From the sequence record MK250027.1: a DNA stretch of 64,000 nucleotides. One strand, written 5' to 3'. The position numbers were made by a program, and so were the translations under genes. Each line of letters starts with the position of its first letter. Position 1 is the first letter of the stretch. Shown here piece by piece: positions 13,366 through 53,206 of this stretch. A model generated the notes under the pieces. The model saw only the letters and a list, made by a program, of their open reading frames with translations. It ran no database searches and was not told where the DNA came from.

Positions 13366-14014
13366 TTTTGATAATAAAGGAGTTTCTATTAGTTCTAAAG
13401 ATATGAAGGAATTTCAGGAGAATGTAATGACAGTAGAAGATATTGTTAATAGACTTTTGAAGTTTTATTCAAAGGATAAGACATATATGGGTGAACAGAA
13501 ACAAATGCTTNNNNNNNNNNNNNNNNNNNNNNNNNNNNNNNNNNNNNNNNNNNNNNNNNNNNNNNNNNNNNNNNNNNNNNNNNNNNNNNNNNNAGCAGAT
13601 AATAAATTGCATAAACTTATTATGTGGCGTGATGATAACGGTCTTCATAATTTTGCAATGTGGCTTAAGAATGAAGATATGCTTGGTGGTAAGCTTGTAA
13701 AAATTTATCCAGAAGATGATGATATTTTTACAAAGAATCAAATGGAAGGTGCAATGTATCTTGCAGAAATTAATAAGATACCATATTTTGAAGGATGTGA
13801 TGAACATGCGGATAATTATGTATATCAAACAAAGTTGAAGGAACTTGATGATGAAATTGAAAATATCAAGAATCAACGAACATCTTGTAAGAACGAAATG
13901 AAATCTATTCAAGATAGATATGCTGAACTTCTTACATATTATGCAAAGATGAAAGTAAAGCAAGTTAAATTGCAAATTGAAAGAGAAACATTAGTTAATA
14001 AACATAAGAAGTAA
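13352..14014 (+). CDS. Hypothetical protein with C-terminal coiled coil
   Basis: ORF in frame across an N-run. Confidence 0.6.
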   Translation: MIKFNFDNKGVSISSKDMKEFQENVMTVEDIVNRLLKFYSKDKTYMGEQKQMLXXXXXXXXXXXXXXXXXXXXXXXXXXXXADNKLHKLIMWRDDNGLHNFAMWLKNEDMLGGKLVKIYPEDDDIFTKNQMEGAMYLAEINKIPYFEGCDEHADNYVYQTKLKELDDEIENIKNQRTSCKNEMKSIQDRYAELLTYYAKMKVKQVKLQIERETLVNKHKK

Positions 14015-14213
14015 TAGAANNNNNNNNNNNNNNNNNNNNNNNNNNNNNNNNNNNNNNNNNNNNNNNNNNNNNNNNNNNNNNNNNNNNNNNNNNNNNNNNN
14101 NNNNNNNNNNNNNNNNNNNNNNNNNNNNNNNNNNNNNNNNNNNNNNNNNNNNNNNNNNNNNNNNNNNNNNNNNNNNNNNNNNNNNNNNNNNNNNNNNNNN
14201 NNNNNNNNNNNNN

Positions 14214-14946
14214 NGTATTAACTATTATTCGTATTCCTAACAGAAGTAGAACAGAAGATAATCAAGATCCTGTATATACTACAATACCGGTTGGTATGAT
14301 GATAAAGGATAATATTTTTATTACAGCATATTATGGACAGAATAATGTTATATCAAATTTCATTAATTGGAGTAATCAGAAAAAGATTAATGATAGAATA
14401 GGATATAATCTTTATATAAGTATATTTCTTGAATCTAATTTTTGGTTTCTTAAATATCTTAAACAAATTCATATTCAGNNNNNNNNNNNNNNNNNNNNNN
14501 NNNNNNNNNNNNNNNNNNNNNNNNNNNNNNNNNNNNNNNNNNNNNNNNNNNNNNNNNNNNNNNNNNNNNNNNNNNNNNNNNNNNNNNNNNNNNNNNNNNN
14601 NNNNNNNNNNNNNNNNNNNNNNNNNNNNNNNNNNNNNNNNNNNNNNNNNNNNNNNNNNNNNNNNNNNNNNNNNNNNNNNNNNNNNNNNNNNNNNNNNNNN
14701 NNNNNNNNNNNNNNNNNNNNNNNNNNNNNNNNNNNNNNNNNNNNNNNNNNNNNNNNNNNNNNNNNNNNNNNNNNNNNNNNNNNNNNNNNNNNNNNNNNNN
14801 NNNNNNNAGCAGCACTTATTCCAGGATTTTATGGAATGAATTTAAATAATGGAATAGAAACATGGGCATATGGATTTCCTTTTGCTGTTTGTTTAACAGG
14901 AATATGTGCAGGAATATCTTATTTTTTATGTAAACTATTTAAGTAA
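14214..14946 (+). CDS. corA: CorA-family Mg2+/divalent cation transporter (partial; start and middle in N-runs)
   Basis: TIIRIP...YTTIPVGMMIKDNIFIT before the gap and PGFYGMN plus a TM helix after it, in the same frame. Confidence 0.75.
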
Positions 14947-14960
14947 ATATAAATATAAAT

Positions 14961-15161
14961 ATGAGTATATGTTTTAGAAATATAGATAAATGTAAATATT
15001 CAAAAGAAGAAATAAAACTTCGTATTATTGAAAATCTTATAGAAAATAGGTTTAAAAATTACAGTAATAAAGAGTTGAAAGATTCTATGTATGGTACTAA
15101 TAATGTTTACCCAAGATTTAATGAAATTTATAATTGGATTTGTGAATATGTATTTGAATAA
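14961..15161 (+). CDS. Hypothetical protein
   Basis: 66-aa ORF. Confidence 0.5.
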   Translation: MSICFRNIDKCKYSKEEIKLRIIENLIENRFKNYSNKELKDSMYGTNNVYPRFNEIYNWICEYVFE

Positions 15162-15165
15162 TGAT

Positions 15166-15366
15166 ATGATACGATTTAAAAATAAAGATAATAATATAAA
15201 ACATGAATTAACAAATGAAGAGATAAATCTTAAAATTCATGAATTAGTATTAAAAACTATTACTGCAAAAAGAACTTATCTTTCTGATATATGTACAGAT
15301 ATGTCAAAAGAAGATGGATATTATAAAAAAATGGTATCTATTATAAAAGAACATATACATGATTAA
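15166..15366 (+). CDS. Hypothetical protein
   Basis: Short ORF following the previous stop. Confidence 0.45.
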   Translation: MIRFKNKDNNIKHELTNEEINLKIHELVLKTITAKRTYLSDICTDMSKEDGYYKKMVSIIKEHIHD

Positions 15367-15647
15367 GTTATTATATAAATTAAAAATAAACAAAATATTA
15401 AAATAAAAGATAATATTTAAATAATAAAATTAAATAAATAAAAGTATGTTGATTGGTTCATGTGTATTATCTNNNNNNNNNNNNNNNNNNNNNNNNNNNN
15501 NNNNNNNNNNNNNNNNNNNNNNNNNNNNNNNNNNNNNNNNNNNNNNNNNNNNNNNNNNNNNNNNNNNNNNNNNTATCGTCTATATTATTATTGGACGAAA
15601 GAGTGTAAAAGTTAATTATTAATTCACATTTAAATAATAATAGAAAA

Positions 15648-16133
15648 ATGGAAAATAATAAACAAGAGGTTAATGAGATTATTGAGAAGTATGATATTCT
15701 TATCAAAAATGCAATGAAGGCGCGTGAGAAAGAAAAACTTAATACTTATAAGTTGGTTAAGGCTCGTCTTCTTGAGTATAAAACAGGTGATAAGGATAAA
15801 AATGATAATTATCCAGTATTGGATGAAAAATCTGAAATGCAGATTCTTAATAAGATGGTAAAGGAACTTCAAGGTGATATTGAGATTCGACAGAAAACAA
15901 ATAGTCATTTGGATGAAGTTGAAGAATTTACACATCAGATGAACTATATTAAGGATNNNNNNNNNNNNNNNNNNNNNNNNNNNNNNNNNNNTTCAGTAAT
16001 TGATAAGTATATTTCTGATAATGGAAATTATTCTCAAAAAGAAATGGGTAAGGTTATCGGTTTTGTTCGTTCATCATTTAAAGCAGTTGATGGTGGAATG
16101 GTAGCAAAACTTGTTAAATCAAAGATGTCTTAA
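15648..16133 (+). CDS. GatB/YqeY domain protein
   Basis: AMKAREKEKL..., KEMGKVIG, VDGGMVAKLVK typical of YqeY. Confidence 0.8.
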   Translation: MENNKQEVNEIIEKYDILIKNAMKAREKEKLNTYKLVKARLLEYKTGDKDKNDNYPVLDEKSEMQILNKMVKELQGDIEIRQKTNSHLDEVEEFTHQMNYIKDXXXXXXXXXXXXSVIDKYISDNGNYSQKEMGKVIGFVRSSFKAVDGGMVAKLVKSKMS

Positions 16134-42925: not shown

Positions 42926-42956
42926 TGTAGACAATAATACATTATTAATATATAAT
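42926..42956 (+). promoter_or_regulatory. Sigma70-like promoter TAGACA-N17-TATAAT
   Basis: TGTAGACAAT motif with exact 17-bp spacing, recurring at 43014 and 47125. Confidence 0.65.
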
Positions 42957-43013: not shown

Positions 43014-43044
43014 TGTAGACAATATCAAATAAATAACATATAAA
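43014..43044 (+). promoter_or_regulatory. Sigma70-like promoter TAGACA-N17-TATAAA upstream of the tRNA
   Basis: Second copy of the motif. Confidence 0.65.
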
Positions 43045-43164
43045 TAATATAATAATTAAAAACAAACGCTTATTTGATTTTCGTAGCGTTATGGATAAGT
43101 TGATAGAATTCAGAAATTCCTTTTAAGACGAATACACATGGAATGGTCCATTGGTGGAATTGGT

Positions 43165-43473
43165 AAAGTGTTTGCCTGCATTAATTTGTAGAATCCATCA
43201 AATTCAGTATCAGTTAGGATTAAATTTTAAATATTAGTAGTTGCTATTGACGAAAATATTGACAATAATTAATTTATTGTTACCTGAGGAATAAGTGTTT
43301 ATTTAATAAACAACGAAGAAGCTGACTAAGAAAACCTAAGGTCTTCATAAGAAGATAGCTTGGTAATACTGAGCCAAGATAATTTTTAATTATAAGGTGC
43401 AGAGACTATACGGTGGGAACTAATAGCAAGTTAAGATATAGTCCAAACTTTATAGAAATATAAAGAGTTTTTG
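43165..43473 (+). ncRNA. Group I intron in the tRNA D-loop (309 nt, no ORF)
   Basis: 5' exon ends in U and intron ends in G; P1 GGU-AAA/UUU-GCC; P10 AGACAC/GUGUUU; GCAGAGACUA and AAGAUAUAGUCC core elements. Confidence 0.85.
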
Positions 43474-43488
43474 AGACACGAGGGACTT

Positions 43489-43836
43489 AAAAAATTTGAG
43501 TGCTCTATTGAGAAATCATAGAAGTAGAATCTCCCTAACGAAACGGAAGCCTAATTATTGGTGACAATAATGGTGGTGACGAACTCACTAAGTTGTTATA
43601 GAACGTTAATCTATATTAAATGTAAATTGAAGTGTTACAGCATAAATAGCGAAGAGACTATAGAGGAGATACCTAAGTTAAAGTACACGAAGAATAATCA
43701 ATTAGATTATCACTATATATGAAGAGTATATAGTTTTATAATAAGGAATGCGCATTACTTTAATATGGTAGTAAAATAGTCCAGACTACAACATCTTAAT
43801 AATTAAGATGGCTTGTATTAAAGCAAGAGTAGTAAG
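43489..43836 (+). ncRNA. Group I intron in the anticodon (U^AA; 348 nt, no ORF)
   Basis: P1 ACUU/GAGU with U.G at the splice site; GAAGAGACUA and AAUAGUCC core; terminal G; same site as the cyanobacterial trnL intron. Confidence 0.85.
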
Positions 43837-43893
43837 AAAATCCCTTGGGCAGAAATGCCCGTGCCGGTTCGAATCCGGCATGGACCACATATA

Positions 43894-43933
43894 AAAGTCT
43901 GATAATCAATAGGTTAGATTATCAGACTTTTAT
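43894..43933 (+). terminator. Terminator after the tRNA
   Basis: aaaagtctgataatc/gattatcagactttt. Confidence 0.8.
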
Positions 43934-43972
43934 TTTTATATAGTATATAAAGTATAATTAATATTTTTAATA

Positions 43973-45109
43973 ATGATTACAATTACAGAACAATATATAA
44001 AAGAGTACCAAAAGAAATTAGATGATATTTCTAAATCATTTGATTTAGAGAAACAACATATTATAGTTGAAGAATTATCAATTAAAGTTTCTGCACCAGA
44101 TTTTTGGGATGATTTTGAAAGTGCGACATCAATCACAAAAGAACTTAATACAGCAAAAGAAAAGATAGATGATGTTGAACATATGAAAATGCTTATTGAT
44201 GAGTTATCAACTGCATTAATGTATTATAAGGAATTTGAAGGTAAAGATGAAGAAGAATATGTAAATCTAGCGAATTCTGAATTAATTAGTGAATTCAGTA
44301 AATTTGAGGATAAGTATAGATTTGTTGATCCTACAGATTCATTAGGAGCTGTATTAGACATTAATGCAGGTGCAGGAGGAACAGAAGCAAATGATTGGGC
44401 AAATATGTTATTCCGTATGTATGAGATGTGGGCAAAATCAAATAATTATAAGTTTAATGTTTTATATTATTCAGAAGGGGATAAAGTAGGTATTAAAAAT
44501 GTATCTATTGAAATTACTGGTAATAATGCGTATGGAACATTAAAAGGTGAAACCGGTGTTCATAGAATGGTAAGGGTTTCACCATATAATGCACAAGGTA
44601 AACGTATGACTAGTTTTGCTGCAGTTTCTGTTGTGCCTTTAGTAGATAATTCTATCAAGGTTGAAATTGACGATTCTAAATTAACAATAGATACATTTAG
44701 ATCTTCTGGTGCTGGTGGTCAAAATGTAAATAAGGTAGAATCTGGTGTACGTGTAAATTATATGTATACAGATCCAGATACAGGTGAAACAGAAAAAATT
44801 CAAGTTGCAAATACAGAAACAAGAGATCAACCAAAGAATAAAGAAAGAGCAATGCAAATTCTTAAATCTATTCTTTATAAGAAAGCATTGGATAAACAAT
44901 TAGCTAAGAAAAAAGAAATAGAAGATGCAAAACTTAAAAATGAATGGGGTGCACAAATTAGATCTTATGTATTTGATGATAAGCGAGTAAAAGATCATCG
45001 TACAGGTTATCAAACAACTGATGTTGATTCTGTTATGAATGGAAATATAAATGGTTTTATAGAATCATATAATAATTGGATTATTGAGCAAGAAAATAAT
45101 AGACTTTAA
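43973..45109 (+). CDS. prfB: Peptide chain release factor 2
   Basis: GAGGTEANDW, VRVSPY (SPF-type anticodon motif), GAGGQNVNK, WGAQIRSYV; single uninterrupted ORF. Confidence 0.93.
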   Translation: MITITEQYIKEYQKKLDDISKSFDLEKQHIIVEELSIKVSAPDFWDDFESATSITKELNTAKEKIDDVEHMKMLIDELSTALMYYKEFEGKDEEEYVNLANSELISEFSKFEDKYRFVDPTDSLGAVLDINAGAGGTEANDWANMLFRMYEMWAKSNNYKFNVLYYSEGDKVGIKNVSIEITGNNAYGTLKGETGVHRMVRVSPYNAQGKRMTSFAAVSVVPLVDNSIKVEIDDSKLTIDTFRSSGAGGQNVNKVESGVRVNYMYTDPDTGETEKIQVANTETRDQPKNKERAMQILKSILYKKALDKQLAKKKEIEDAKLKNEWGAQIRSYVFDDKRVKDHRTGYQTTDVDSVMNGNINGFIESYNNWIIEQENNRL

Positions 45110-45166
45110 TTAAATATTTTCTTATAAATAATTAATGAAATATTTTCCTATATAAAATAAATTATG

Positions 45167-45221: not shown

Positions 45222-45443
45222 ATGAAAGTACGTATAGGAAGAGACGAAAAGTTCATTGAACTTGGTAAGTATGACGATATAACAATTATAGATGATGCTG
45301 GTACAGAGTATCGCATTGAAGCAAATGATCCTTGTTATCAAGGTAAGGGTATAAAAGTTTATGATATTGATGGGTGCATTCTTGTAAAACCATCTACATC
45401 AAATCTTGTACAAATTTTCTCAACATCAAAGATTGAGTTGTAA
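45222..45443 (+). CDS. Hypothetical protein
   Basis: 73-aa ORF behind the promoter. Confidence 0.7.
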   Translation: MKVRIGRDEKFIELGKYDDITIIDDAGTEYRIEANDPCYQGKGIKVYDIDGCILVKPSTSNLVQIFSTSKIEL

Positions 45444-45498
45444 TATCTATAATTGTTTTATATGTTAATATGAAAATTTTAACTATAAAATATATTAT

Positions 45499-46026
45499 AT
45501 GGGTTGTCACACATGGGTTTATAAGCGAATCAGTTCGATGTCTAAAGATGAAATAAACAGAGAAATTGATTGTGTTATTAACGAACGTAAACAGCGTTTT
45601 TACATGTCTTCTAATGAAGATGAGTATGCAAATAGAATGGTAAAACTTACTAAAGATAGTTCTGTTGCACCAATGTCTTATGCAGATGCTATTAAACGTT
45701 ATAAAGAAGCAAGAGAAGAAACACAACTTATTATAGATAAGTTAACACTTGCTAAGCAAACAGGTGATTTATCTGTAATAACATATAAAAATGGATTTGA
45801 TACATCAGAAGATGATACATATCTTTTCTTATGTACAAATACTCCATTTAGATGTTATGAATATACAGATAAACAATTTACAAATAAAGATGAATTGATT
45901 TCATATATACATTCTGTTGATCCAAAAAAAATTGAAGTTTATAATAATGATAAATCATTAGATGAACAGATATATGATTTCTTTAAACTTCATGGTGACA
46001 ATAATTTATTATTTGAATTCGGTTAA
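45499..46026 (+). CDS. Hypothetical protein
   Basis: MGCHTWVY start; 175 aa. Confidence 0.75.
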   Translation: MGCHTWVYKRISSMSKDEINREIDCVINERKQRFYMSSNEDEYANRMVKLTKDSSVAPMSYADAIKRYKEAREETQLIIDKLTLAKQTGDLSVITYKNGFDTSEDDTYLFLCTNTPFRCYEYTDKQFTNKDELISYIHSVDPKKIEVYNNDKSLDEQIYDFFKLHGDNNLLFEFG

Positions 46027-46028
46027 AA

Positions 46029-46493
46029 ATGAGAACAAATAAGTTAAATGAATGTGTACTACCAATGATGTATACAAACATGGATTTAGAAATTGATTCT
46101 TATTCATTGTTATGTTGTTTAGATGAAATTGGATTTACATATCCGCCCTATCCTAATTCAACTGAATATTTGAATATTGGTGAATCACGGAACCTTAGAG
46201 AATTTAATGAAACTAATAAACATGTATTCTATCACATGATTTATGATTTTATTAAATGGACATATGGAATATCTGTAAGTTTCTGGGAATCTAAATCAAT
46301 ATCATATAATGAAAGAGGAACAATTGAAAAAGTTGATATTGAAGGTATGGATGAAACATCAGATATATATGGTATTATTACAAATATGGTATTTGATGAT
46401 TTAAATACTGCATATAAAACTGTTGCACATATGATTGTTTCTGATTTAAATTGGAGACATAAGCAAAAGAAAGAATTTTCTAAGGTTAAATAA
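46029..46493 (+). CDS. Hypothetical protein
   Basis: 154-aa packed ORF. Confidence 0.7.
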   Translation: MRTNKLNECVLPMMYTNMDLEIDSYSLLCCLDEIGFTYPPYPNSTEYLNIGESRNLREFNETNKHVFYHMIYDFIKWTYGISVSFWESKSISYNERGTIEKVDIEGMDETSDIYGIITNMVFDDLNTAYKTVAHMIVSDLNWRHKQKKEFSKVK

Positions 46494-46554
46494 GACTTTT
46501 TTAATAAACAAATATATACATAATAATTAATAATATTTTAAATTCTATTTAAAT

Positions 46555-47115
46555 ATGGGATTGTTTGATTTTCTTAATAAGAATAAGTCAGAGGATGTAA
46601 GTACATTGTTTACTGACGAAAATAAAGGAAGTTGTGCTTCTGCAGCTGATGCATATAAGAAGTCTCGTTATGGAATTCTTAAGACTGATAAAATGATGCT
46701 TGAGGAATTTTTCACGGATGTTAAGCTTCTTGTAGAACAGAAAAATATGGAGCGAAGCTATTGTGGAATGGTTCAAATCGGGGATGATATTATTAAGTAT
46801 CTTCCTAAGATTAAGGATCGTCTTGGACGTCAGCTCGGTTATAAAGTAATTGTGTTGGATGATAATACAGTTATTACTAATAATGTATCAAATACAAAAG
46901 ATACAATTAAGAGTGGACATACGTATCTCCTTCTTATTTGGGATAAGTTGTCTGTAGAGGAAGTTGCAGAATATAATGCTACACATCCAGTAAATGATGA
47001 TTCAGATGATACATCAACTGTTGATTCATTGAAGCAAGATGAAGATACAAAGAAAGTTGAAACATCTGATACTTCAAAGAAAAACACAAAGTAGAAGAAA
47101 CTTAATAAAAAATAA
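46555..47115 (+). CDS. Hypothetical protein (ends TAG 47094 in code 11, TAA 47115 in code 15)
   Basis: 179-186 aa. Confidence 0.75.
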
Positions 47116-47124
47116 TTATCAATT

Positions 47125-47155
47125 TGTAGACAATTTGTTTATTAAGTAATATAAA
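47125..47155 (+). promoter_or_regulatory. Sigma70-like promoter TAGACA-N17-TATAAA
   Basis: Third copy of the tRNA-type promoter. Confidence 0.6.
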
Positions 47156-47161
47156 TATTAA

Positions 47162-47390
47162 GATAGAGAAAATGGTGATAGTAATTATACATTTGATGCT
47201 TTTATAATTAACCATTTAATTTGTGTATAATTACTTTTCTTGTAAATATTTGGTTCGGTTAATTAACGAATATTTACAAACAAAGAAGAAAGAAGTAAAA
47301 TGTTTTAGAAGAGAAACATTTTACAAATGGAAAAGGAAAGATAGATATGAGGTGAAAAGTCGTTGTGATAACGGTTTTTCACCATTTTTA
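47162..47390 (+). ncRNA. Candidate structured ncRNA (four hairpins)
   Basis: Hairpins at about 47169-47217, 47240-47279, 47295-47324 and 47351-47383 (last has a T-tail); no ORF; tRNA-type promoter upstream. Confidence 0.5.
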
Positions 47391-47425
47391 TTTTTATAAT
47401 ATTTTCATAATTTAAAAATTATATG

Positions 47426-47433
47426 TATCTTTG
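47426..47433 (+). promoter_or_regulatory. Bacteroidota sigma-A -7 element
   Basis: TATGTATCTTTGTATT. Confidence 0.7.
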
Positions 47434-47462
47434 TATTATAATAATTTAAATATAGAACTATT

Positions 47463-49055
47463 ATGAAATATTTGGTTAATTGGATTGAAAAAGAAATGCA
47501 TCCAGATCAGCATATAAGTTCTAAGTCAACATCTTCAGAATATTTTTACTTCTATGGTAAAAAGGTTCGACTATCTGATCACTTAAATGGTGAACATAAA
47601 GATAATGATTTGGAAATTATATGTGTGCATGATTTATTCGGTAAGAATAAACAATACATTGTAAAAGAGGGTTCATCTCCTTCTATCATGTCTGTTCCTG
47701 ATGTAAAGACTTTAAAAATTGTATTATCTACTTTTTTATTTCAATATAAAAATAGTTATGATAATATACGAATAAAAAATGCTATTACAGAAAGTACACA
47801 AAAAAGTAATTTTGATGTATGCATTGATAAACTCAAAAATGGTGGAATTCTAAATTCTTCTGATATTGGTTCTATTAACGTATATATGAATACTATTTGT
47901 AAACAATGGGGAAGTATGAAAGAAGATCTTCGATTAACAATGTTACATCTGTTTAATTCTGGTAAATCTGTTGATGAAGTTAAAAATATCATTAATGTTG
48001 AATTTCCTGTTAATAATGCAAATAATTGGCAAAATGAAAATATTCAAGATAACATAAACAAAGTATATCAATATATGCCATATGATTATAAAATAGATGA
48101 ACATATTATTTGTCAGAAATCATTATCAGTAAAGAAAATAGAAGATAGTTATAAGAATCTTCTTGTTGAATATGAAAATTATAGACAGCAAACAATAGAG
48201 AAATTGTGTCAGCAAGATAAAGACAGATATGTTAATATCTTTGGTTCATTACTTGTAAAAAATACAGATGGACGTTATTCTAAGTTATCTATAGCACAGA
48301 GAAAGAAATTTAGAGAACTTGCATACAACAAAGTCCCTTATGATATATGTCTTAACGTATTTAATCATACATTTAAGATAAAGAAAAATAAAAGATTCTT
48401 ACCAGAACCTACAGAGCTTGGTAATGTGGTAAATAAATTTTTAAAACTATACAACATTGGTATTGTAAAATATCCAGACGAAGAAGATTTTGATAATATA
48501 TATTCTTCTAACTTTGAAACTAATATTACTACTGTAGAAAGTAATAATGTAGACGAAGTAGAAACTAATAATGTAGACGAAGTAGAAACTAATGATAATA
48601 ATGTTAATGTAGAAGAGATAATCAATTATGATAATGATATAATTCATTTTATTCATGATACTGATAAAGTTATAAAGGAATCTTATGAATATGCAAATGC
48701 AGAATTTTTGAATATTATTGATATTCATGAAATGTTTGATAATAATCAGATTAATATTCTTGATGAAGTAATTAAGAAGATTAATGATACAGATAAGTAT
48801 ACATCATTTGAAACTCGTCGTATCACTGATGTATTTGCAAAGCATTATTCTGATATATGGGATAAGTTAACATGGGGTCAAAAAGAACTTTGTTCAACTA
48901 TTATTACGGAAGAACGAATGAATCTTAATGAAACAGATTTTATTATCAATAAGATATTTGATAAAACATCATTTAATTGGCCTGTAACAGAGCAATGTCG
49001 CAAGGATATTAAAATGTATTGTCAACGTATAAAAGAGAGCCGTATGGCTGCTTAA
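47463..49055 (+). CDS. Hypothetical protein
   Basis: 530-aa ORF with no TAG; 24-bp tandem duplication (NNVDEVET) near 48544-48591. Confidence 0.8.
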   Translation: MKYLVNWIEKEMHPDQHISSKSTSSEYFYFYGKKVRLSDHLNGEHKDNDLEIICVHDLFGKNKQYIVKEGSSPSIMSVPDVKTLKIVLSTFLFQYKNSYDNIRIKNAITESTQKSNFDVCIDKLKNGGILNSSDIGSINVYMNTICKQWGSMKEDLRLTMLHLFNSGKSVDEVKNIINVEFPVNNANNWQNENIQDNINKVYQYMPYDYKIDEHIICQKSLSVKKIEDSYKNLLVEYENYRQQTIEKLCQQDKDRYVNIFGSLLVKNTDGRYSKLSIAQRKKFRELAYNKVPYDICLNVFNHTFKIKKNKRFLPEPTELGNVVNKFLKLYNIGIVKYPDEEDFDNIYSSNFETNITTVESNNVDEVETNNVDEVETNDNNVNVEEIINYDNDIIHFIHDTDKVIKESYEYANAEFLNIIDIHEMFDNNQINILDEVIKKINDTDKYTSFETRRITDVFAKHYSDIWDKLTWGQKELCSTIITEERMNLNETDFIINKIFDKTSFNWPVTEQCRKDIKMYCQRIKESRMAA

Positions 49056-49061
49056 AATAAC

Positions 49062-49105
49062 AAATAGGATAGATTACTAATTAATAGTATATCTATCCTA
49101 TTTTA
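49062..49105. terminator. Bidirectional terminator
   Basis: aaataggatagat/atctatcctattt between convergent genes. Confidence 0.75.
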
Positions 49106-49108
49106 TTT

Positions 49109-52100
49109 TTATATTGCATATCCATTATTACCTTTTGATTTATTATCAGACTATGCTTCTTGTTTCGCTTGCCATGCTCGCGCTTTAGCATTATCGTCAA
49201 CGTCAACAAAGTTCTAGCCATTAGAAACTAAATATGTATTTCTATTTCCTTGGTTAATTTTTGTCATTGTCATATGTTTATGTTTAGGAATATCTGGTAT
49301 ATTATCTTGCATCTTCATATGTTGTCTATGTCTATTCCTTAACTCATCATATGTAGATTCTATTACATCTGCTAATGAAACAAGTTGCTATATATTTGTA
49401 TCCTTTAATTCATCAGTATTTATGGATGTTAATGCTTTAATCTTATTAAATAATTGTTTATCTTTTTCCTATGATATTTTAACCATTTTCATTTCTGGAT
49501 TATAACTAGGATTTTCAATTATATTATCAAATATCATAGATGTTGGAACACTTGTACTTGTATTTAATGAAGGCATCTTCATATTAGAAGTGTCATAACT
49601 ATTATTATAATGATTGTTTACCATTGGAATATTATTAGTTGAACTATTTAAAATAGGTTGTGTCATTTGCATATCTATTTTACTTTCGTTCAATAATGGT
49701 TCAGTCATTACCATATTCTATTGATAATCATTATATACAGGTTGTGTCATTACCATTGATAAACTACTGTCAATTATTTCTGGTGAAAACATTTTCATAT
49801 CAGGTATTGAAGTATTATCAATAGGTTTAGACATAACCATATTTGATAAAGATGTATCATTTATTAATTCAGTCATTACCATATTTGATAAAGATGAACT
49901 ATCTGTTAATTCAGTAAATTTCATATCAGCTGTAGATACATTCATATCTAAATATGTCATATCCATATCTGCTAATGAAATATCTTCATTAGGTTTAACC
50001 ATAATCATATCAGGTAATGATGTATTCAATTCTGGATATGTCATTTTCATATCAGCGGTTGAAACATTCATATCTAAATATGTCATATCCATATCGCCTA
50101 ATGATGTACTTGTATTTAAATATGTCATATCCATATCAGGTAATGATATACTTGCATTAAGATATGTCATATCCATATCTGCTGTAGATACATTCTATTT
50201 TATTGAAGTCATTGTCATATCTCCTAATGATGTACTTGTATTAAGATATGCCATATCCATCTATATTTTTGATGTACTAATATCCATTGGTGTCATCTTC
50301 ATCTAACCATTCGAAGCACCTGTAATTTCAACTTCAAACATCTGATTAGTAAATTTAGTATCATCTCCTTTATTTGGTATCATATCCATCTTTGTTTTAG
50401 TAAGATACATATCCATTTCTACCATTTGATTATGTGCTTGTGGTATATCATCACCTTCCAATGGTTGTAAATTATGATGTTCCTTACTAACATTCTATGG
50501 ATTTGGAATTAAATTCATCTTATTCTTTACTGCATCCTATGGAACAGAAATAAAATTCATACCATTATGTGAACTATCAATATTGATACCAATGAAATTC
50601 ATGTCGACTTTACTTGTATCAAAATATGTAGAATCTTTTTTCATATTCATTTTAGTATGTTCAAGATTCATTTCAGGTTTTACATATGTCATAGAATTAT
50701 GTGAACTGTCTAACTAAGGTTTAACATATGTCATAGAATTATGAGATGTATCTATATTTAATTCTACATATGTCATATCTGATTTAGATATATCCATTTC
50801 CGGCTTAACATATGTCATAGAATTATGTTCTGTATTCATATCGGGTGAAACATAATTCATATCAGTATGATCTAAATTCATCTTAGGTTTAACATAATTC
50901 ATATCTGCATGATCAAGATTCATTTCTGGTTCAACATAATTCTAATCATGTTTATCCAAATTCATATCAGGTGAAACATAATTCTAATCAGGTTTATCCA
51001 AATTCATTTCTGGTTTAATATAATCCTAATCTGGTTTATCTAAATTAAATTCAGGAACAACATATGTCATATTATCATGGTCTAGATTCATTTCTGGTTC
51101 AACATAATTCTAATCTGGTTTATCCAAATTCATATATGGTTTAATATAATTCATAAGATTATGATCAAGATTCATATCTGGGCGAACATAATTCTGTTGA
51201 AATTTATCAAGATTCATTTCTGGTTTTATATAATCCTAATCAGGTTTATCTAAATTAAATTCTGGGATAACATATGTCTAATCTGGTTTATCTAAATTCA
51301 TTTCAGGTTCAACATATGTCATATCATTATGATTCAAGTTAAACTCTGGTGATATATAATCATACTATGGTTTATCAAGATTCATATCTAATTCTTGATA
51401 ATTCTATTTAATCTTATCTAAATTTTCATTAGGTCTAATATAATTATGTTGAATTTTATCAAGATTCATATTAATACATGGATCTATCAAGATAAAACTT
51501 GCATCATCGCCTGTTATTTTTATATTAGGATCTAATTGAGCAGCAGATGTATCTATAATTCCTGGATCAACTATATTATAATATGCATCACTTCCAACTA
51601 CATATGTATTATGTAACATATATTGTATCATTACTTTGATACGATTTTTCATTTGTTCCTATGCTTTTATAACATCAGGTCCATATAATAATTGTTCATG
51701 ATCATAAATATAAGATTCTTCATTAGGTCGTTGTAAATCATTATAGAATGTATCTCTATCAGGATTTGCGGAATCTCTTACTAATACAGGTCTAGAATGA
51801 ATAACTTTCTTAAGATATTTCTTCAAATCTTTCCAAGACTATATAGAATATAAACTATCTCGTACATTTGCCATATGCCATGTATTATCTGGAAGCTGGG
51901 GTCCATATACATCTGCCATACCGTATAATCTATCATAATCAGAATTATCACCAACTTTATGCGTTATTTCTTTATCAAAATACGCAGTATATTCAGATGG
52001 TGTCATGAACATTCTTCTCATCCATCTTGTTCTGAAATTTGCATGATTATCAAAATCAGTTGATGTATAAGAACCTCTTTCTGTAATAGAATCAAAATCA

Positions 52101-53206
52101 GAAATCCAATTAACTGCGTTTTCAGAAGTTGTACTCTTTTTAGAATTATCATCCTAATTTGGATCTAATGTATCTATTTTCTTCATCAAACCATTAGAGT
52201 AATAAGTCTTTACATTCTTAACACTTATAGTTATCTTTGTCTCCGCGTCCTTATGTTCATCATATGCAGTAGCGTATTCATTATCCCATATAGATTCTAT
52301 ATCAAACTCACATGGTCCACATTCCAATGCATATATAGGAAAATTATTCTAATCAACACTATATACTGCAACTTTATCACCTGTAGATTTATCTAACTTA
52401 TATCCTGTCTATAATATACGTCTATCAAATACATATATAATCATTTTGAAATATCTGTATATATCAGGTAATATCCATCTTTGCCATACATCATCATATG
52501 CTGCTTTCCTATACATCTCCAATAATGTTCTGATTTTCAAATCAACACCTTCGTAACATTCCAATGTAATCTTTGCATCTTTTAAACGAACACCCTTTGT
52601 AGCATCAAATGATGTAAGTTTCTCTAAACCGGATATTTTCTTAAATAAATAAGGCATACTTCTTTGAATCTCATACAAACCTTTAACGAATGTTTTTATA
52701 TAAGAAGCTCTCGCATCTTCATTTCTATTCATTAAATAATTATATGTATTATAATGTTCCTGATTACTCCAATTCTCTGTTCTATCAAAATTCAAAAAAT
52801 TAAGGTTAAGCAACCCCATTGGATATTGATCATAATCTTCATAATAGATATTATTGAAAAGACTTGTTTTTTGTTGATTTTTTATTGTTTCTGTATCCAA
52901 AACAGAACATCCCCAATCACCAAACTCAACTTTGAACATAAGTCTTGTCGGATCTTCAAAACCACTACTGAATATTTCCGAATTCATTTCAGTACCGTAT
53001 TCATTTCCCATATGAAATCTTTTCATAATTTCATTCTGTTCCATGAATCTTCCTGATGGTAATGGCCATGTTTCACTATTGGTTACTTTCTCCTCTAATT
53101 CATTTGTCTTTGTATCACCAGTAAGTAATGAATTAAAACCACTTAGGAAATTATATGCTGAATTTGTTCCTTTAACTATATTTTTAACTGCACTAAATAA
53201 ACTCAT
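49109..53206 (-). CDS. Large virion-type protein with 14-aa tandem repeats, 1365 aa (TAG=Gln)
   Basis: Six track ORFs lie in one frame, separated only by TAG; ends TAA 49109. Confidence 0.8.
49560..50300 (-). repeat. Coding 42-bp tandem repeat, tract B (SLxDMxMTYLxxxx)
   Basis: 14-aa period, e.g. SLPDMDMTYLNTST / SLGDMDMTYLDMNV / SLADMDMTYLDMNV. Confidence 0.8.
50640..51480 (-). repeat. Coding 42-bp tandem repeat, tract A (EMNLDKPDQNYVxP)
   Basis: About 19 degenerate units read directly. Confidence 0.85.

Follow-up and report, generated by a model that had tools for sequence, protein, structure and literature searches.

The catalogue of structured RNAs encoded by phages is a small one. RNA C and RNA D of phage T4 are stable small RNAs encoded beside the phage tRNA genes, the phi29 packaging RNA (pRNA) has loops that pair over 4 nucleotides (nt) between molecules and, among bacterial RNAs, the aptamers of purine riboswitches consist of parallel hairpins held together by a loop-loop contact. 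The locus considered here lies in a 64,000-nt stretch of sequence record MK250027.1 (the window), in which an interval at 47162-47390 had been proposed, from the sequence alone, to encode a novel structured RNA of about 230 nt. Comparison of the locus with its relatives supports that proposal, with covariation in four helices and one tertiary contact, and with no counterpart in Rfam. The RNA forms a new family within a well-known kind, the small structured RNAs of phages, and is distinguished by a covarying kissing loop and a promoter of the tRNA type, and so far it has been seen only in Lak megaphages and their close relatives.

From 46500 to 48000 the window is 100% identical to Prevotella phages Lak-B7 and Lak-B8; other Lak-B genomes from baboons are 98-99% identical over this region, and the human Lak-A1, A2 and C1 genomes 72-75%. 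Since TAG is read as glutamine in Lak phages (Devoto et al. 2019, PMC6784885), open reading frames (ORFs) were translated with genetic code table 15. Under this code the RNA occupies an interval (47116-47462) between two + strand genes, at 46555-47115 (186 residues) and 47463-49055 (530 residues), and the interval is among only four gaps of at least 250 nt in the window.

Structure and conservation of the RNA

Folding of the + strand from 47150 to 47400 gave a minimum free energy of -57.1 kcal/mol, compared with -35.8 +/- 3.8 kcal/mol for 200 dinucleotide shuffles (z = -5.7), none of which folded as well; the - strand folds with -42 kcal/mol (z = -6.5), 15 kcal/mol more weakly than the + strand. 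All four hairpins that had been predicted are present in 47162-47390, the two pairs of arms quoted as perfect are exact, and the linkers are purine-rich as described. On the + strand, a purine-rich 5' leader (47162-47180) carries the motif GGUGAU (47174-47179) and is followed by hairpin H1 (47181-47234; 11-bp stem 47181-47191/47224-47234 with a 32-nt loop) and hairpin H2 (47240-47279; 13-bp stem 47240-47252/47267-47279 with a 14-nt loop). Linker J2/3 (47280-47294) is also purine-rich, with letters that vary in the alignment and an A/G-richness that is constant, and leads to hairpin H3 (47295-47324; 12-bp stem 47295-47306/47313-47324). A single-stranded purine tract, J3/4 (47325-47350), contains the 17-nt block GAAAAGGAAAGAUAGAU (47330-47346), and the element closes with hairpin H4 and a U-run (47351-47395, hairpin 47351-47383), an intrinsic terminator.

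Fourteen sequences were aligned, drawn from contigs with homologues of the 530-residue protein, from GenBank Lak-A, B and C genomes and from IMG/VR contigs. MAFFT misaligned the divergent stems, and a covariance model was therefore built from seven Lak-B-type sequences, with the four helices as its structure, and used to align all 14; at each of the 14 distinct loci it matches over the full length, with 107-248 bits. Standard pairs fill 98.8% of cells in this alignment (H1 99.4%, H2 97.3%, H3 98.6%, H4 100%) versus 38-54% after a shift of the 3' partners by 1-3 columns. Both-sided changes affect 18 of 49 pairs (two in H1, each from A-U to G-C, four in H2, eight in H3 and four in H4), in an alignment that is fitted to the structure and in which independent events are few. 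The observed covariation score was matched by zero shuffles, and RNAalifold recovers the same four helices without being told the structure. Compensatory changes, whose absence from homologous loci had been named beforehand as grounds for discarding the RNA, were in this way found in every helix. They are densest in H3, with eight of 11 modelled pairs changed on both sides, its sequence being almost wholly replaced between the Lak-B and Lak-A types with pairing kept; the H3 loop is not conserved, and H3 is probably a structural spacer. The strand is given by pairs of another kind: a G-U pair in H4 (alignment columns 219/235) is present in 14 of 14 sequences and the adjacent U-G pair (220/234) in 13 of 14, and changes within lineages are one-sided transitions to G-U. 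With these invariant G-U pairs and within-lineage changes to G-U, the structure fits an RNA of the + strand and not a DNA cruciform or a - strand transcript.

The loops of H1 and H2 contain a further pairing. Nine nucleotides of the H1 loop (47205-47213, +), UAAUUAACC, are the exact complement of nine in the H2 loop (47257-47265, +), GGUUAAUUA; in the Lak-A type and in contig L038 the two strands read UAAUUAUCC and GGAUAAUUA. All 14 sequences keep the strands exactly complementary; a single A-U to U-A swap divides them 7 to 7, and in L038 the swapped loop letters are those of the Lak-A type, on an H2 stem that otherwise resembles Lak-B. When the two loops were shuffled 20000 times, complements of this length turned up only 13 times for B7 and 25 times for A2. 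Since the exact complement is kept throughout with a compensatory swap, it indicates a 9-bp kissing-loop tertiary contact that would lock H1 to H2; as far as sequence goes, pairing within one molecule and pairing between molecules are both compatible with it. A scan for other pairings kept in all sequences found, beyond these five helices, only trivial A/U runs.

Conservation of sequence, as opposed to pairing, is concentrated elsewhere. Across the 14 sequences, taken from genomes between which the neighboring 530-residue protein is only about 50% identical, no letter differs in the leader GGUGAU, in the 17-nt block of J3/4 or in the entire upper half of H4 including its loop; the base of the H4 stem covaries and its upper stem is invariant. 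A terminator alone needs no such conservation, and the invariant leader, purine tract and H4 top are therefore probably bases that are contacted by a partner. The possibility that GAGGUGA and GGUGAU are Shine-Dalgarno mimics was ruled out, the copy in H4 being base-paired and not conserved in the Lak-A type.

The interval had been described as free of ORFs. Strictly it is not, in that a 58-residue ORF with a GTG start (47223-47399, +) overlaps H1 to H4, but this frame is intact only in B7, B1 and B4, is broken by 1-2-nt insertions or deletions in contigs L034 to L037 and is absent from Lak-A and Lak-C, and it was judged spurious. Whether table 11 or table 15 is used, the longest frames of the 14 sequences lie on different strands and in different phases. 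A small protein gene was rejected on the ground that no open frame is kept across relatives and, for the same reason, the region is non-coding.

Searches for known RNA classes were negative. No part of the window matched Rfam 15 at gathering scores, and from 47000 to 47550, at E-values up to 10, only chance-level matches appeared, falling on the terminator (AgrB, 23 bits against a threshold of 40; snoR125, 17.5 against 100). ARAGORN found no tRNA or transfer-messenger RNA (tmRNA) gene in the window and there is no T-arm motif in 47162-47395, in agreement with the earlier judgement that the element is neither tRNA nor tmRNA; that it is not an intron agrees with the lack of an Rfam match. A 6S RNA was rejected since the consensus forms four separate hairpins instead of one long, largely double-stranded rod around a central bubble, and since none of the 6S models gave a match; a sponge of the CsrB/RsmZ type was rejected since GGA occurs only in J3/4 and in none of the H1-H4 loops; and a phi29-type pRNA, since no covariance model in Rfam matches. 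The element and its sequence strings were not found in the papers searched, on Lak phages and on structured RNAs in microbiomes.

Relatives of the locus were sought through the 530-residue protein, whose homologues in public assemblies form a graded series from 97% down to 39% identity. Twelve homologue contigs were fetched and compared for the element, which lies directly upstream of the homologue in 7 of 7 loci at 85-49% identity. A scan of metagenomes added two further minor variants, bringing the total to 16 distinct versions, and the combined search of IMG/VR and metagenomes for distant homologues found only copies of the Lak-A, B and C types and these two variants. The RNA is a single-copy element, with one copy each in the complete Lak-B7, Lak-A1 and Lak-C1 genomes by covariance-model search. 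Among 185,579 genomes of prokaryote species, a 20-nt core pattern had one chance match, unsupported by the covariance model.

Transcription signals and gene neighborhood

A sigma-70-like promoter precedes the RNA at 47127-47155 (+), with a -35 box TAGACA (47127-47132), a 17-nt spacer and a -10 box TATAAA (47150-47155); its predicted start at about 47161-47164 supports initiation of the RNA near 47162. The pattern TAGACW-N16-18-TATAAW occurs five times in the window, always on the + strand (41163, 42928, 43016, 45100 and 47127), where 0.73 matches are expected and 0 of 100 shuffles reach five. Two of the five precede a split tRNA gene at 43145-43887, and the longer string found at 47125-47156 (TGTAGACAAT, 17 nt, ATATAAA) has a second copy at 43014-43045, about 100 nt upstream of that gene. 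The promoter had originally been called tRNA-type; ARAGORN detects no tRNA in the window, yet the recurrence before the split tRNA gene agrees with the description. Over the whole Lak-B7 genome there are 36 matches to the promoter pattern versus 20 for a reversed control, several of them adjoining tRNA genes. Lak-B, the Lak-A type and contigs L037, L038 and L040 all retain the two boxes at a distance of 17 nt, despite differing spacer letters. Two other promoter candidates, TATTAAG..TAAATA and TGTAGACAATTTG with mismatches, are not enriched, unlike the -35/-10 pattern. The 5' limit of the conserved element is given by contig L039, in which similarity to the other loci does not start until about 15 nt upstream of GGUGAU.

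At the 3' end, the terminator-like stem with a T-run that had been predicted is H4, which has 15 pairs (five of them G-C) and a loop of 3 nt, is followed by ATTTTTATTT and is kept in 14 of 14 sequences. It is the sole terminator-like site in 46000-49500, and, as a G+C-containing hairpin that directly precedes a U-run, it qualifies as an intrinsic terminator. Outside the RNA, and marking the 3' boundary of the unit, is a Bacteroidetes-type -7 box, the decamer TGTATCTTTG (47424-47433, +), ahead of the ATG at 47463. Exact copies of the decamer occur six times on the + strand (6399, 10315, 34714, 42538, 45165 and 47424), each 30-47 nt before an ATG and often followed by TATTGT and a common leader (caattaaaaatataa). 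The Bacteroidetes -7 consensus, TAnnTTTG, is contained in the decamer, which probably represents the host-type class of promoters in this part of the genome, separate from the TAGACW/TATAAW class. With this box at 47424, the 530-residue protein gene is equipped with a promoter of its own, and every relative retains the box, even where the RNA is lacking.

The 530-residue protein (47463-49055, +) is conserved in all Lak-like contigs found and its gene has zero TAG codons. It matched nothing in Pfam, PHROG or the protein atlas, and an AlphaFold2 model (predicted local distance difference test score 64) has an all-helical core (110-345, 410-530), a low-confidence N-terminal 100 residues and an acidic linker (349-412) predicted to be disordered, with no fold match at E <= 0.001. 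Among the neighboring proteins searched against Pfam and PHROGs, only release factor 2 (RF2) and, weakly, a minor head protein were matched. The latter is a 1365-residue ORF on the - strand (49109-53206), convergent with the 530-residue protein gene and 1.7 kb downstream of the RNA, that is readable only with TAG as glutamine (24 in-frame TAG codons). It encodes dozens of tandem peptide repeats of about 11 residues, MNLDKPDQNYV-like and then DMxMTYLNTSxSL-like, weakly matches a minor head protein in PHROGs (E = 0.003) and is probably a late structural gene.

Upstream of the RNA lie the split tRNA gene, the RF2 gene and four small ORFs without a family match, which span 45222-47115, the last stop codon being at 47115. 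The RF2 gene, prfB (43973-45109, +), scores 402 bits against a cut-off of 370 and, in Lak-B7, is read in one frame, without the frameshift usual for bacterial prfB; a phage-encoded RF2 has been reported previously for Lak phages. RF2, the split tRNA and the new RNA form, at most loosely, a translation-related neighborhood. The link between the RNA and RF2 is not an obligatory one, because in L039 the RNA and the 530-residue protein gene are preceded by wholly different upstream genes.

The split tRNA gene accounts for a 1057-nt gap before the RF2 gene and was missed by ARAGORN and by the tRNA model. It extends over 43145-43887 (+), with about 650 nt of inserted sequence between its two parts: GGTCCAT at 43145-43151 is the 5' strand of the acceptor stem, and a T-arm (GCCGG-TTCGAAT-CCGGC) and the 3' acceptor strand, ATGGACC, occupy 43863-43886. 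Within the insertion, 43291-43465 matches the Rfam Intron_gpI family (40.5 bits, E = 1.2e-8, slightly below the gathering score of 50), promoters lie at 42928-42956 and 43016-43044, and a hairpin with a T-run follows at 43891-43945. An intron-bearing tRNA-Tyr is mentioned for baboon Lak genomes (Devoto et al., PMC6784885), and the split gene may be that tRNA. Elsewhere in the window, two gaps of 281 nt each (14015-14295 and 15367-15647) were noted, as was a G+C content of 15% over 14001-16000 compared with about 26% in the remainder.

A dispersed repeat of about 200 nt with conserved hairpins, ending in TGTTATTAAGTTAAATATCTAA, is present in 1 to 5 copies per Lak genome, and each copy immediately precedes a gene, a tRNA or the new RNA. 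Copies were located at L003:2156-2397 (Lak-C1), L039:1954-2195, L060:1208-1449, L083:546-787 (-), L084:572-813 (-), L085:377-618 and L086:624-865 (-). The different upstream genes of L039 suggest recombination at such repeats, which could be elements resembling miniature inverted-repeat transposable elements or transcribed leader cassettes. The spacer of the RNA promoter resembles the end of the repeat; a promoter shared with the repeat was nevertheless rejected, since the repeat end is the 3' arm of a hairpin.

Possible function and competing explanations

The reading preferred here, to which about an even chance is given, is that the element is a separate gene for a structured non-coding RNA of about 230 nt that is stable and acts in trans, with an invariant 3' surface that binds a partner. 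The tRNA-type promoter would start transcription near 47162 and H4 would end the transcript near 47390. The 9-bp kissing helix would lock the 5' half, H1 and H2, into a compact fold and confer rigidity and nuclease resistance, H3 would be a spacer whose sequence is free to vary, and the 3' half would display the invariant purine-rich single strand beside the invariant top of H4. The RNA would then accumulate as a stable species and act in trans through this surface, most likely by binding a protein, as decoy or scaffold, and less likely by binding a pyrimidine-rich RNA. Bacteroidota are not known to have Hfq, ProQ or CsrA, so that a partner would have to be something else, of host or phage origin. 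The function first suggested, a protein sponge or regulatory RNA, is likewise a hypothesis: the repeated loop motifs of CsrB-type sponges are missing, but an invariant purine-rich single strand is present.

Several observations weigh against this reading. No terminator separates the upstream stop codon at 47115 from the RNA, and read-through from the box at 45165 is possible, which would make the element also a 3' untranslated region. In Lak-C1 and L039 the dispersed repeat is inserted between the -10 region of the promoter and the RNA, and the 5' end of the RNA may differ in these two. About three lineages underlie the covariation (the Lak-B group, L038 and the Lak-A/C group), so that independent events are few. 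Complements of the 17-nt block in Lak-B7 and Lak-A1 are no more frequent than those of a reversed-pattern control, in a search confined to these phage genomes. Finally, none of the five loci with 39-40% identical homologues of the 530-residue protein carries the RNA, either on inspection of the site or by the covariance model. In this clade (L041 to L045), not found in IMG/VR, the site holds a terminator, the same promoter box (TGTGTATCTTTG) and a 96-residue ORF, over which no gene is called in L041 and L045; upstream of the site lies a gene with a DNA polymerase B exonuclease domain. Either the RNA is younger than the split from this clade, or it was lost or moved there.

The principal rival explanation, though an unlikely one, is a base-pairing regulatory small RNA (sRNA), with the purine tract or the loops as a seed for pyrimidine-rich sites in host or phage mRNAs. 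An order of promoter, hairpins, conserved single-stranded block and terminator is typical of sRNAs, and invariance of the 17-nt block would suit a seed; however, the lack of excess complements just described tells against it, and Bacteroidetes sRNAs usually target A/G-rich start regions, with which a purine-rich seed cannot pair. The missing terminator between 47115 and H4 also permits a cis-acting role, as the 3' end module of an upstream operon in which the box at 45165 could drive the four small ORFs and then the RNA, the module protecting the message from exonucleases and insulating the next gene. Such a module needs no covarying kissing loop, invariant single-stranded tract or conserved promoter of its own, and in L039 the element is fully conserved behind different upstream genes; this explanation was considered slightly less likely still. 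That the RNA instead governs read-through of H4 into the 530-residue protein gene, as an attenuator, riboswitch or processive-antitermination leader, would explain why it always lies directly before that gene, even after the L039 rearrangement, and the kissing H1 and H2 do resemble the architecture of purine-riboswitch aptamers. In the Lak-B type the leader AAAAUGGUGA can also pair with the 3' arm and tail of H4, UCACCAUUUU, but this pairing does not covary when H4 changes: the altered H4 3' arm of the Lak-A type is compensated by the H4 5' arm and not by the leader. Moreover, a conserved promoter box stands between H4 and the gene in every locus (at 47424, before the ATG at 47463, in the window), no P1-type helix encloses H1 and H2, and the 39-40% clade has the gene without the RNA. 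The intervening promoter sets the RNA apart from the riboswitch or attenuator class, and the wider explanation is improbable.

Two further explanations concern what the pairings are for. Since sequence does not separate intramolecular from intermolecular pairing, the two mutually complementary loops might, as in pRNA, join separate molecules into dimers or rings, for example as a virion or packaging scaffold, and the late-type 1365-residue ORF, with its 24 in-frame TAG codons and its weak similarity to a minor head protein, lies 1.7 kb downstream on the other strand. There is, however, no match to the phage pRNA of Rfam or to another family and no link to portal or terminase genes, and adjacent hairpins with a 5-nt joint and a 32-nt H1 loop permit an intramolecular contact, so that self-assembly is held to be very improbable. 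Hardly any weight is given to the last possibility, that there is no RNA and that the locus is a DNA-level element (an origin, a packaging site or protein-binding palindromes) or a small protein gene. The inverted repeats form on the - strand too, and a 58-residue ORF is present in B7; but that ORF is not conserved, the + strand fold is the more stable by 15 kcal/mol, the other strand or a cruciform would have A-C mismatches in place of the invariant or lineage-derived G-U and U-G pairs, and stems that change their letters yet keep pairing are not expected of protein-binding palindromes.

A bolder form of the trans-acting reading, put forward as a long shot, places the RNA at the center of a new phage ribonucleoprotein directed at host translation or RNA machinery during the Lak code switch, or else in a multimeric scaffold. 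The invariant purine strand and the terminator loop could sequester a host factor, for instance RF1 or a ribosomal or RNA-binding protein; in the other version, a multimer of a kind known so far only from phi29 pRNA would be assembled through the kissing loops. In most Lak genomes the neighborhood of the RNA includes the intron-split tRNA and the phage RF2 gene. If the partner should prove to be part of the translation apparatus, the RNA would bear on how these phages take over a host with a different genetic code.

Relation to described RNAs

Lak phages have not been cultured, and functions are assigned to only a minority of their genes. In this setting the locus gains a concrete identity, as an RNA gene extending from promoter to terminator with a secondary structure and a tertiary contact supported by covariation. 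It adds a new family to the phage-encoded structured RNAs, provides a defined molecule for probing, pull-down and structural work, and yields a covariance model that can mark Lak-type phages in metagenomes.

In general description the Lak RNA is likest to T4 RNA C and RNA D, as a phage-encoded, non-coding, structured RNA in the range of 100-250 nt with a promoter of the type found at tRNA genes of the same phage. The likeness is one of description only and no relation in sequence or structure is expected; unlike the T4 RNAs, the Lak RNA stands alone with its own terminator, outside the tRNA clusters of Lak-B7. Its complementary hairpin loops, which include an AACC/GGUU core, recall phi29 pRNA, another phage RNA with two such loops. 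However, the 4-nt pairing of pRNA joins different molecules, whereas the Lak complement extends over 9-10 nt in neighboring hairpins of one molecule, and the phage lineage and packaging system differ, with no Rfam match for the Lak RNA.

Outside phages, adjacent hairpins with a covarying loop-loop contact followed by a terminator are shared with the purine-riboswitch aptamers. The Lak RNA differs from these in having neither an enclosing P1 helix nor a three-way junction, in the interposition of H3 and a 26-nt linker before the terminator, in the promoter between terminator and next gene, and in the absence of an Rfam match. CsrB and RsmZ likewise combine several hairpins, purine-rich single strands containing GGA and a terminator hairpin, but in the Lak RNA the GGA motifs amount to about two copies, confined to J3/4, and the conserved loops have motifs of the UAAUUA type. 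Bacteroides GibS comes from the same host phylum and is similarly short and terminator-ended, with hairpins and conserved single-stranded blocks; the Lak RNA is set apart from it by being phage-encoded, by a TAGACA/TATAAA rather than a TAnnTTTG promoter, by its kissing contact and by a lack of homology, as judged from the absence of an Rfam match.
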